In this document: piece by piece, positions 60,094 through 63,029 of the stretch
Layout: every line of letters begins with the position of its first letter
How positions within the stretch are numbered: the stretch's first letter is position 1
Origin: Thecamonas trahens ATCC 50062
Taxonomy: Eukaryota > Protista > Apusomonadida
Direction: 5' to 3'
DNA length: 64,000 bases
Assembly (NCBI RefSeq): GCF_000142905.1
Contig: NW_013657672.1
Span: forward strand, 142,244-206,243
Position numbers and translations under genes: made by a program
The notes under the pieces: generated by a model
Told to the model about the DNA's origin: nothing
Database searches by the model: none
Seen by the model: only the letters and a program-made list of their open reading frames with translations

Positions 60094-61100
60094 ATGGCCG
60101 ACCTCCTCTCTTGGGTCCTTTCATGGGTCCCCGGCCTCGGCCCAGACCCGTTCTCGGCCTCTGCCATGTACGCTGCCCCCCCCCCCCTCCCTACCCCCCT
60201 CGCACTCCCCTTCACTTCCTCACGGCAGACACTCACCTCATGGCGGACAGGCGGACAGCGCTGCGGGCAACCAGTGTACGGGCAGAGCTGCTTCAGAGGC
60301 AGACAGACAATCGGGTGGCTGCACTGGAGGCTGATGTGGCTGATTTGTTTCGCAAAGGCAAGTGCAGGCATGCTCGGCTGCGTGTGGAGGCGATCTTGGC
60401 CGAGCTCGAGACCTTGCATGTGCTGGAGATTGTGCATCCGCTTGCCGAGCTCTGTCTGGCGAGGCTGCACTTGCTCGAGGTGCCTGCAGTGGAGGATGAG
60501 CCTTTGTTGACTGCAGTTCGATCGTTGGTCTTTGCCGCCCCGCGCGTATCGCAGCTGAAGGAGTTGGTGGCTGTGGCGGATCAGGCGTCGCGCCGGTTCG
60601 AGCCGGAGGTACTCGCGGTGCCTGCGTCAGGCGAGGGCGTTCATGCCAGGCTCTATGCGCTGCTCACGCGCAGCGCATCGACGCCGCCTGTCGCGGCTGT
60701 CGACGCTCGTGTGGCACGCATCGCCAAGATCCACAGCCTGCCGGACGACGTGATCGGCAGCAGCGAGAGTGGGGCCGGGCCGTCGGCCGGCCGCGAACGG
60801 CGCATTCAGCCGCTGCTCGACGTAATTGCTGGCCGCATCGCGCGCCTTGAGGGTGGCGGCGTGCAAGAATCAAGCTCCGCACAAGTCCTTGAGCTCCAGC
60901 TGCAGCAAGAAGCACTGTCCCGAGCGCTGAGCCACCCTCAGCCTGGCCCGTGCAGTTGCGGCGCTGCTAACGACGCATGCTTTGTGCCGTGCGGCCACGG
61001 CGGAGTGTGCAAGGCGTGCCTTCCGGCCCGGGCAACGGGCCCGGACTCGAGTTGTGGCGAGTGTGGGTCGCCGATCATGTACATGATCGGGCTGGAGTGA
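60094..61100 (+). CDS. IST1 (ESCRT-III-like) N-domain fused to a C-terminal RING finger; intron 60168-60250
   Basis: ARLRVEAIL...LEIV..LAELCLARL...AVRSLVFAAPR...KEL (IST1 core); CSC...FVPCGHGGVCKAC...CGEC. Splicing gives FSASAMRTALRATSVRAELL. Confidence 0.75.
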
Positions 61101-61157
61101 ATGTGTTTGCAAAAGAAAGGAGAGTTACTGACAAAGACGGAAACAAGCTGCGTGGAG

Positions 61158-63029
61158 CTAGACCTTGATGGCGCGCAGGTTGGTGAGGATGTCCTTAAAG
61201 TCGGGACGAGCGGCAGGGTCAGCGTCCCAGCACGCAACGATGAGGGTCTCGAACGGCTTAGGCACATATCCCGGGATGACCGGCCGCAGGCCCTCGAGCA
61301 GGACCTTCATGCCGACCTGCATGGGGTTCATGCCTTCATACGGGATCTGGCGGGTGGCCATCTCCCACAAGACAATGGCAAACGAGTAGATGTCTGCCTT
61401 GTAGTCGTACGGCTCGTTGCGGAGGACCTCGGGCGCCATCCACTGCGGTGTGCCGCACTGGGTCATGGTGCCGGATGCCTCCTTGGCGGTGGTGAGGCCA
61501 AAGTCGGTGATCTTGACAGTCCAGTTGGTGTCAACCAGCAGGTTGAGTGACTTGAGGTCGCGATGGATGATCGGCGGCTTGTTGCCGTGAAGGTAGGCCA
61601 TGCCCTTGGCGGCGTCGGTTGCCATCCGCACCAGCAGCGCCCAGTCCATGTCGCACGATGGGTCGTGGAGGACCGAGTAGAGTGAGCCGCGGTCGAGGTA
61701 CTCGGTGAGGAGGCACATCGACGACGCCTCGAGGCACGCACCCATAAACAGCGTCACATTCGGGTGCCGGAGCTTGGACATGATCTCGACCTCACCTTGG
61801 AACTCCTCCAGCGCCTGCGGCGAGAGCTTCTGCTCCAGCAGCTTTTTGATGGCCACCTCGGTCCCACGCCACACGCCGTACCACACCTCACCGAACGCAC
61901 CGCGGCCGAGGAACCGCCCAAACTCTACGTCCGCCATTTCGATCTCCCAGTCGTGCTTGACCGGCGCGGCGGGCGCGCCCGACGACGATGACGTCGTCGA
62001 CGTCAGCCCCAGCACCGACAGGTCCACGTTTGAGTCGCCCAGCAGGTCGTCCAGCATCGCTGACGCCGCGTCGGCCGCGTCAGCGTCGGCGTCTCCGCCA
62101 CCCATATCCGACGGCGGCGGCGCCGGTGACACAGGCGTGCCCGGCGAGATCCCCATGGGAGAGCCCATGCCCGACATGCCCGCAGGCGAGCCCATGCCCG
62201 GCGAGACCGACGACGGCGTCGCCGACGTGCCAGCAGACGCGCCCATCGACGACAGTGTGCCCACCATCGCCGGCGATGCAAGATCGAGCGGGGACTTGGC
62301 GTCCATGTTAAGAATTGTCGGCCCGGCACCCCGCGAGACCAGGTACTCGGCCACCTGCTGGTGCCGCCAGAAGCATGCGTAGTGCAGCGGCGTGTTGCCA
62401 TGCCGGTTTTTGGCGTTCACGTCGGCTCCCGCACTCTCGCACAACATCCGCGCAATGAGAAAGTGGCCCTGTCCACCCACCGTCAGACAACAAACAAACC
62501 AAGAGAGCCGCACCATCCATGAGTTCCTTACCTCTTTCTCACCACCGTCCGCTCGCCCCCCCCCCCCCCTCCCCTCCCTCCTGCCTTCCCTCCCCCCCCC
62601 CCCCCCTCCGCCACTCTCCCTGTGTTCCGAAAACACAACATTGGCCGAAAAAGGGGCTTGAACAACCACACCCGGTGGAGAAAAGCCACCTCTACCTCTG
62701 CCTACCGTCCCCACCGCCCCCCCTCTCCCTCCCACTCCCCCCCAGCCTCCTTCCCCTACCTCCTCCCCCCCCTCCTCTCCCTTTCCACCTAAGAAAATGC
62801 GTACCTCAGAGGCTGCGTAGTGCAGGGCGGTGTCCGAGGCGCAGTTGCGCTCGTTGGCGTTTGCCCGAAGCTGCACCAGGCGGGTGACGACCTCCTGGTG
62901 GCCCTTGCGGGCGGCCCAGTGAAGCGGGGTAAAGCCGTGCTCGTCCTTCTCGTCCACTGGACGGCCCATCTGGAGCCAGTAGTTGACTCGGGCGACGTTG
63001 CCCTGCGCTGCTGCCGAGTGGATGTTCAT
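61158..63029 (-). CDS. ILK: Integrin-linked-kinase-like ankyrin-repeat TKL kinase with intact catalytic motifs; exon 1 at 63029-62805, intron 62469-62804
   Basis: Ankyrin repeats [22 protein letters not shown] and [14 protein letters not shown]...VAEYLV..GA; kinase [21 protein letters not shown], WMAPE. Confidence 0.8.
   Translation of the reverse strand: [623 protein letters not shown]

Follow-up and report, generated by a model that had tools for sequence, protein, structure and literature searches.

A probable apusomonad ILK orthologue with a complete kinase catalytic site in Thecamonas trahens

The status of ILK, kinase or pseudokinase, was in dispute for over a decade, and animal ILK is the scaffold of the ILK-PINCH-parvin complex. 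A gene of the apusomonad Thecamonas trahens ATCC 50062 raises the question of whether that scaffold may descend from a working enzyme. The gene lies on the minus strand at positions 61158-63029 of the window, the 64,000-nucleotide stretch of DNA analyzed here (positions 142,244 to 206,243 of contig NW_013657672.1 in assembly GCF_000142905.1; G000:C8:142244-206243 in our numbering), and its two exons encode a protein of 511 amino acids. The joined exon translations (75 and 436 amino acids) are identical, letter for letter, to the database protein P0001 (XP_013761075.1 / KNC56031.1 / A0A0L0DVA6, 511 amino acids), which is labelled "TKL/DRK protein kinase [Thecamonas trahens ATCC 50062]". A sequence-only reading of the window had instead described an ILK-like protein with an intact kinase domain. 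We consider it fairly probable that the gene is the apusomonad orthologue of ILK and that it carries a kinase domain of ancestral type which is likely to be active. As the pseudokinase state would then be derived in animal ILKs, we file the gene as an ILK orthologue and not as an ILK-type pseudokinase.

A complete integrin adhesome has been reported for T. trahens, and ILK has been reported in Apusomonadida (bioRxiv 10.1101/2020.04.29.069435, citing Sebé-Pedrós 2010). We found no mention in the papers searched of the T. trahens accession or of an intact site in an apusomonad ILK; an earlier mention in the primary adhesome report is possible. The supplements of Kang et al. list no ILK accession.

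The ankyrin domain

The ankyrin domain comprises residues 1-145 of the protein, approximately 4.5 repeats in the same length and register as in animal ILK, and Pfam detects ankyrin families on both exons. Homology searches with the protein took the exons separately, or the database entry P0001, as the query; the joined exons were used only for the comparison with P0001 and for the coordinates of motifs. The placement of the domain was examined in a careful maximum likelihood (ML) tree of segments matching residues 1-145 (LG+C20, with ultrafast bootstrap (UFBoot) and Shimodaira-Hasegawa-like approximate likelihood ratio test (SH-aLRT) support), in which the generic ankyrin comparators were 16 top-scoring proteins picked from 5.8 billion sequences. 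The two apusomonad sequences, P0001 and the environmental relative P0002, join the ten named animal ILKs with support of 100 (UFBoot) and 99 (SH-aLRT) and form the sister group to all of them, while all 16 generic ankyrin proteins and five other ankyrin kinases fall outside the ILK clade.

Pairwise comparison gives a similar picture when only the best single high-scoring segment pair (HSP) is considered. A BLAST search with residues 1-145 returns the protein's own orthologues first and then nearly all ILKs, at 95-122 bits and 41-49% identity; the full-length ILKs score 103-122 bits and are collinear with the domain from residue 2-3 onwards. The best generic ankyrin protein reaches 105 bits, the metagenomic ankyrin kinase P0005 79, the T. 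trahens paralogues at most 62 and the algal ankyrin kinase P0027 39.7. Ranking by whole-sequence score, both against the PDB and in the search of 5.8 billion proteins with residues 1-145, was discarded because weak repeat matches sum in multi-repeat ankyrin proteins, which swamp the lists and make such scores useless for ranking ILK. A structural search of the ESM Atlas was also set aside: it placed an ILK cluster first (TM 0.97) but generic ankyrin clusters followed at 0.93-0.96, so that it did not discriminate between them.

A more specific marker is the octapeptide PLHYACFW, which departs from the ankyrin consensus. A degenerate DNA pattern for it matched 105 metagenome stretches, and in 77 of the 80 retrieved from these the octapeptide stands in an ILK context. 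Full-length open reading frames (ORFs) of 446-466 amino acids are present in 12 of the stretches, and when the 16 ILK-type metagenome ORFs long enough for comparison were set against named proteins by BLAST, every one proved to be an animal ILK, with mites, insects, cnidarians and a ctenophore among the sources. The octapeptide thus appears to be essentially exclusive to ILK genes. It forms part of a segment that covers the counterparts of three ILK residues, H99, F109 and W110, which correspond to H98, F108 and W109 of the T. trahens protein in our alignment (A1); in P0002 two of these are conservatively changed (Y for H and Y for F). Animal ILK uses these residues to hold the LIM1 domain of PINCH. 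The 3F6Q structure guided the design of an ILK variant, H99D/F109A/W110A, that was meant to disrupt PINCH binding, and this variant did not stabilise PINCH expression (PMC3871693). By these comparisons the ankyrin domain is that of an ILK orthologue, and the earlier remark that this region follows ILK closely is upheld by the tree, by the collinear matches and by the nearly ILK-restricted octapeptide.

Six-frame searches of the gapped T. trahens assembly with the full protein, each exon, the C-lobe and two animal ILKs, followed by scoring of the best candidates, revealed no second ILK-like gene. They returned many TKL kinases and ankyrin proteins, none of which has an ILK-type ankyrin domain or a better match to ILK, and within the assembly and this candidate scoring there is no sign of the separate pseudokinase ILK whose presence the sequence-only reading had named as evidence against itself. 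The closest paralogue (L002:340-2394, plus strand, on G000:C53) encodes 684 amino acids, with many generic ankyrin repeats (Pfam hits over residues ~80-335) and, after them, an active-looking TKL kinase domain that contains DFG and ..VQEGLRPEVP and is 47% identical to the T. trahens ILK. Its layout recalls that of TNNI3K, in which ankyrin repeats lie upstream of the kinase. Another locus (L009:718-2907, plus strand, on G000:C1) combines ankyrin repeats and a TKL kinase with a C-terminal extension that, on reading the sequence, resembles a TIR-type domain (WDVFICHGG...RVFLD).

These paralogues bear on a deflationary explanation, namely that the gene encodes an ordinary ankyrin DRK/Raf-like kinase not specifically linked to ILK or to the integrin adhesome, its ankyrin likeness being convergent or a matter of generic consensus. 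The GenBank label TKL/DRK agrees with such a view, protists, plants and animals commonly combine ankyrin repeats with a TKL kinase (as in L002, L009, P0005, P0027 and TNNI3K), and whole-sequence ankyrin scores are dominated by generic repeats. It is nevertheless already disfavored, and we regard it as very improbable: it does not account for the strongly supported grouping with ILK, for collinearity from the N-terminus with an equal number of repeats, or for a non-consensus octapeptide found essentially only in ILK, and the other ankyrin kinases, whether T. trahens paralogues or algal, lie outside the ILK ankyrin clade.

The catalytic site

All canonical elements of a protein kinase are present in the C-terminal domain: the GxGxxG loop, the VAIK lysine, the alphaC glutamate, the HRD aspartate, the catalytic-loop asparagine, the DFG aspartate and APE. 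The motifs listed in the sequence-only reading (HGFTPLHWA and the segment at residues 96-109 in the ankyrin domain; GxGxxG, VAIK, the alphaC glutamate, HRDLKSLN, DFG and GTPQWMAPE in the kinase domain) were all found as described. Every catalytic motif is also kept in approximately 15 environmental relatives from marine metatranscriptomes and metagenomes, which are ~75% identical to the protein overall and presumably belong to other apusomonads. The same relatives keep PLHYAC(F/Y)W, a motif in the alphaG helix of the C-lobe and a short LD-like island in the linker between the two domains.

The contrast with animals drawn in the sequence-only reading, that animal ILK lacks the HRD aspartate and DFG, held in every animal ILK aligned: both are absent from 12 of 12 full-length metagenomic sequences and from all five named ones, and the lysine is kept throughout. 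The pigeon protein, for example, reads PRHHLNSRSVMID and ISMADVKF at these positions. The glycine-rich loop has a different distribution. The ILKs of the sponge Dysidea avara (P0495) and the ctenophore Mnemiopsis leidyi (P0406) retain an intact GxGxxG loop (LGEGKQGE and IGSGSVGE, respectively) with HRD and DFG gone, and in bilaterian ILKs the loop is lost as well (alignment A1).

A further form is encoded by a multi-exon ILK-family gene from an intron-rich eukaryote, found on the metagenome contigs Ga0180216_1001376 (L059:8793-10860, minus strand; 68% GC) and Ga0180215_1044832 (L091:200-2221, plus strand; 62% GC). Read HSP by HSP, with the exons not joined, it contains AAKK, IHGNLKPSN and LAEYG, such that the lysine is kept while HRD is replaced by HGN and DFG by EYG, together with GMKV..REGLRPTIP. 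It is about equally similar to the T. trahens protein and to animal ILKs, and may represent a state between those of apusomonads and animals. Taken in order, the apusomonads have every element, this gene the lysine with HGN and EYG, the sponge and ctenophore the lysine and the glycine loop, and bilaterians the lysine only, a graded series that fits a stepwise loss of catalysis in ILK.

The T. trahens ILK is thus probably catalytically competent, as far as its motifs can tell. A complete site could also be kept by a protein that acts as a scaffold only, its motifs serving ATP binding and stability while little or no phosphate is transferred in vivo. Animal ILK offers a precedent, since it keeps the ATP-binding lysine and is described as binding ATP without catalysis (PMC8933812); parvin, moreover, sits on a C-lobe helix of animal ILK that is conserved in T. 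trahens (PMC3871693). We think this explanation distinctly unlikely, however, as ATP binding alone has not preserved the HRD aspartate, the catalytic-loop asparagine and the DFG aspartate in any animal ILK examined, whereas all seven canonical elements, these three included, are kept in T. trahens and its environmental relatives despite ~25% overall divergence.

Affinities of the kinase domain and candidate partners

The case for ILK orthology is less direct in the kinase domain, and the results that weigh against it, or against a place in an ILK-type complex, are found here and in the linker and candidate partners. In the PDB, the best match to the whole kinase domain is Arabidopsis CTR1 (241 bits), followed by TNNI3K (179), ZAK (178) and then DLK, MLK, TAK1 and BRAF (down to 163), all above ILK at 160. 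The nearest database sequences are protist and plant DRK/Raf-like kinases, among them the metagenomic P0008 (63% identity) and P0005 (58%). Quick ML trees of kinase domains, in which ILK was sampled from animal sequences, join P0001 and P0002 weakly with P0008 and P0005 (SH-aLRT 86) and recover the ILK kinase domains as a fully supported clade of their own, on a stem of ~1 substitution per site and a poorly supported backbone. On these matches the domain is a canonical one, most like the DRK, CTR1 and EDR1 types, and fits its TKL, DRK/Raf-like label.

Holding ILK and P0001 together in the tree costs only 1.2 log-likelihood units (p 0.47 in the approximately unbiased (AU) test), but joining ILK to the plant Raf clade is likewise kept (p 0.64). 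As both arrangements are kept, the AU test has no power here, and the kinase-domain alignment is one that cannot place ILK. The description of the protein as ILK-like therefore stands for the ankyrin domain and for the reciprocal matches described below; it does not extend to orthology of the kinase domain, for which the tree places ILK nowhere firmly.

Comparison in the opposite direction favors orthology. Six animal ILKs (from a bird, amphioxus, Hydra, a sponge, a ctenophore and a priapulid; the human entry P0482 was left out of the animal ILK comparisons) all find their best match in P0001 among the T. trahens TKL loci compared. Their overall scores are 240-270 bits for P0001 versus 205-245 for the other TKLs; for the best single ankyrin alignment they are 100-123 versus at most 54, and for the kinase domain alone 139-158 versus at most 137, a margin of 13-32 bits. 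When the whole genome was searched in six frames with the ctenophore ILK, the T. trahens ILK gene came first by 36 bits. With a mite-like ILK as the query, a match spanning the ankyrin and kinase domains of the intron-free paralogue L002 scored highest, and the T. trahens ILK was second with the best kinase-only match. A homologue search with the ctenophore ILK yielded animal sequences only.

The C-lobe also points to ILK. In a PDB search with the piece encoded by 61161-61388, human ILK ranks first at 63.8 bits, versus 59 for ZAK, 51 for MLK, 47 for TNNI3K and 40.5 for CTR1. The sequence GMKV(A/L)LEGLRP is common to this C-lobe and ILK, all full-length animal ILKs examined retain its alphaG motif, and ILK M402 and K403 correspond to M462 and K463 of the T. 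trahens protein in alignment A1. In ILK, this Met-Lys pair holds the CH2 domain of parvin, and the double substitution M402A/K403A disrupts parvin binding (PMC3871693). Among 386 sequences compared, GMKV occurs in only P0001 and P0008. On the opposing side, alphaG motifs of the type GLRP.IP are frequent in protist TKLs, such that the Met-Lys pair is the only rare part. The best 150 matches of a representative search with a 76-residue C-lobe segment are mostly multi-kinase proteins and include no ILK; many protist TKLs outscore ILK in that search.

A chimera would reconcile these observations differently: the ankyrin domain would be that of a true ILK, and the kinase domain would have been exchanged, among the ancestors of apusomonads, for that of an active ankyrin DRK-type TKL kinase, in which case the intact site would be uninformative about ancestral ILK. 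The proximity of the kinase domain to P0008 and P0005, with which the ML tree groups it, is what such a replacement would leave behind, T. trahens has many TKL paralogues that include the ankyrin-rich L002, and the tree leaves the long ILK stem without a settled position. Against this, animal ILK kinase domains prefer the T. trahens ILK to the other loci compared and one whole-genome search with an ILK put it first, while the alphaG Met-Lys pair is kept and ILK is the best structural match for the C-lobe. At 47% identity, even the nearest paralogue in T. trahens is too distant for a recent swap within the genome. Pseudokinases evolve fast, and this suffices to explain the lower overall kinase score to ILK. 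We consider replacement unlikely, if the most serious of the competing explanations, and retain orthology over the whole length of the protein as the preferred one.

The evidence on partners is mixed. A low-complexity linker of 100 amino acids replaces the short linker of animal ILK, which also tells against a simple equivalence of the two proteins. Within it, the environmental relatives conserve an LD-like island (residues 212-230, positions 62004-62060, minus strand) but otherwise diverge. The island resembles the LD motifs of paxillin-like genes of T. trahens (LDDLLNDL and LDALLNDL), and CH2 or FAT-type domains could dock on it. LIM genes are numerous in the genome, and two of them (L039, G000:C12:449800-452300; L031, G000:C78:25300-28800) each encode five LIM domains followed by a basic tail like that of PINCH. 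Their fourth LIM domain is PINCH-like (…AYCETHYFQLFG…, GKQWHPEHFVCAHCEKPF). In PDB searches, by contrast, their first LIM domains match paxillin above PINCH LIM1, which leaves their identity as PINCH ambiguous, and as both proteins start with an LD-like motif the line between PINCH and paxillin is blurred. A complex prediction that paired residues 1-150 with LIM1 of the C12 gene (L039:739-945) returned a score of 0.00 and no verdict, and is neutral on binding. Nor was a parvin recognized among the tandem-CH candidates inspected: the genes at C30, C10, C34, C51, C41, C14, C81 and C38 were rejected, as their CH pairs with coiled coils appear to be of the actinin type. A separate LIM-containing locus (L020, G000:C27:336935-338494, minus strand) has an ORF of 566 amino acids in which a TKL kinase domain is followed by three LIM domains, the reverse of the order in animal LIM kinases. 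Binding of PINCH and parvin by the T. trahens ILK is something we infer from the conserved contact residues.

Set beside known systems, the protein shares with animal ILK (PAT-4 in C. elegans) an N-terminal ankyrin domain, 41-47% identical, with the PINCH-contact residues, a C-terminal kinase-like domain and the alphaG sequence GMK(V/I).LEGLRP; it differs in keeping the HRD aspartate and DFG (and, relative to bilaterian ILKs, GxGxxG), in its long linker with an LD-like motif, and in an overall kinase-domain similarity to ILK of only ~33-35%. Like the plant ILKs, a Raf-like MAP3K subgroup (Arabidopsis ILK1-6, Medicago MsILK1), it combines ankyrin repeats with a Raf-like kinase. However, the plant proteins have no integrin, PINCH or parvin context, and the algal ankyrin kinase P0027 has an ankyrin domain outside the ILK clade and a kinase domain that goes with plant Raf/CTR1/EDR1. 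Protist ankyrin DRK-type TKL kinases (the metagenomic P0005 and P0011, and the paralogue L002) have active-looking kinase domains that are 47-58% identical to that of the T. trahens ILK, upstream ankyrin repeats and similar C-lobe motifs, but they carry several more repeats of generic consensus, lack PLHYACFW and lie outside the ILK ankyrin clade. CTR1/EDR1, TNNI3K, ZAK and MLK are the best structural matches to the whole kinase domain, yet they have no ILK-type ankyrin domain and fall below ILK on the C-lobe.

If the gene is an ILK orthologue throughout, its intact site may well be ancestral rather than regained, and descent of animal ILK from an active enzyme whose catalysis was lost later is plausible, as one of two readings. 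The idea is not new: the plant literature treats proteins with ankyrin repeats and Raf-like kinases as one ILK family of plants and metazoans, finds canonical catalytic motifs in plant ILK4-6 and all green-algal ILKs, infers independent catalytic decay in plants and animals, and has already proposed an active ancestor for the wider family (PMC9403797, PMC5376563). The T. trahens ILK would be a Ser/Thr kinase of the TKL (Raf/DRK-like) type that acts on substrates and docks through its ankyrin domain and C-lobe on adhesome-type partners, namely PINCH-like five-LIM proteins, possibly parvin, and an LD-motif network. That apusomonad ILK works as a Ser/Thr kinase within a PINCH/parvin-type scaffold, and that the ILK-PINCH-parvin module began as a kinase unit which lost catalysis stepwise toward animals, is a possibility we take seriously without quite favoring it.

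Gene structure, transcription and meaning

The coordinates of the gene and its features are collected in Table 1. Translation starts at the ATG at 63029, and the splice donor GT (62804-62803) and acceptor AG (62470-62469) delimit an intron that keeps the frame and is therefore read through in the raw ORF. Both exons are covered by RNA-derived contigs of the four runs X1, X3, X7 and X8 (from at least three studies), whose joint omits exactly 336 nucleotides with CT..AC ends on the plus strand; the gene is thus transcribed and spliced as modelled. The 336-nucleotide GT-AG intron proposed from the sequence is in this way confirmed by its splice sites, by the identity of the spliced product to P0001 and by the RNA contigs. 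The 3' untranslated region reaches at least 61065, as record 1 of run X1 covers 61065-62325.

Table 1. Features of the T. trahens ILK gene; positions are those of the window and residues those of the 511-residue protein
Feature	Residues	Position	Strand	Basis
Exon 1: ATG, N-terminal cap and ankyrin repeats 1-2	1-75	62805..63029	-	Translation; Pfam Ank_4, Ank, Ank_2; aligns from residue 2-3 with the animal ILK N-terminus
HGFTPLHWA	31-39	62913-62939	-	Motif coordinates
Intron, 336 nt, GT..AG, C-rich, low complexity, in frame		62469..62804	-	Splice sites; RNA contigs; spliced product equals P0001
Exon 2 (436 amino acids)		61158..62468	-	Translation
Start of exon 2: ankyrin repeats 3-4 and C-terminal cap	76-145	62259..62468	-	Pfam Ank; ILK ankyrin-domain chains among PDB matches; motif specificity; alignment A1
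14-residue ankyrin motif including PLHYACFW (counterparts of ILK H99, F109, W110)	96-109	62367-62408	-	Motif coordinates
Ser/Gly/Pro/Met-rich low-complexity linker	146-246	61956..62258	-	Sequence
Protein kinase domain	247-511	61161..61955	-	Pfam PK_Tyr_Ser-Thr 1.4e-64 (on exon 2)
GRGAFG	263-268	61890-61907	-	Motif coordinates
VAIK	280-283	61845-61856	-	Motif coordinates
alphaC Glu (10-residue segment)		61779-61808	-	Motif coordinates
HRDLKSLN	377-384	61542-61565	-	Motif coordinates
DFG	397-399	61497-61505	-	Motif coordinates
APE (in GTPQWMAPE)		61428-61436	-	Motif coordinates
alphaG segment (counterpart of ILK G401-M402-K403-V404...LEGLRP)	461-474	61272..61313	-	C-lobe PDB search; alignment with full-length animal ILKs
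Stop codon		61158..61160	-	Translation

Short metatranscriptome contigs also stack inside the C-rich intron at 62554-62609, to a depth of 75 in run X3. They contain mismatches and rearranged joints, and most likely reflect low-complexity poly-C/CT sequence of other organisms rather than expression of the intron. Downstream, on the opposite strand, lies a convergent neighbor (60111-61100, plus strand) that matches the Pfam family Ist1, an ESCRT-III regulator (1.7e-25), and whose tail is Cys-rich and RING-like (CSCG..CFVPCGHGGVCKAC..CGECGSPI).

For the annotation of T. trahens, the gene corrects a public label, TKL/DRK, that hides a link to the integrin adhesome in a lineage next to animals and fungi. 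Its interest is tempered by two precedents, as ILK had already been reported in this organism and an originally active ILK family has been proposed in the plant literature. As an ILK orthologue with a complete catalytic site, it would serve as an outgroup for dating the loss of catalysis and as a reference for deciding which features of animal ILK, such as ATP binding and the alphaG-parvin contact, are relics of an enzyme, and it would allow kinase activity and PINCH/parvin-type scaffolding to be tested in one protein. Its main interest is the handle that it may offer on when and how ILK lost catalysis.

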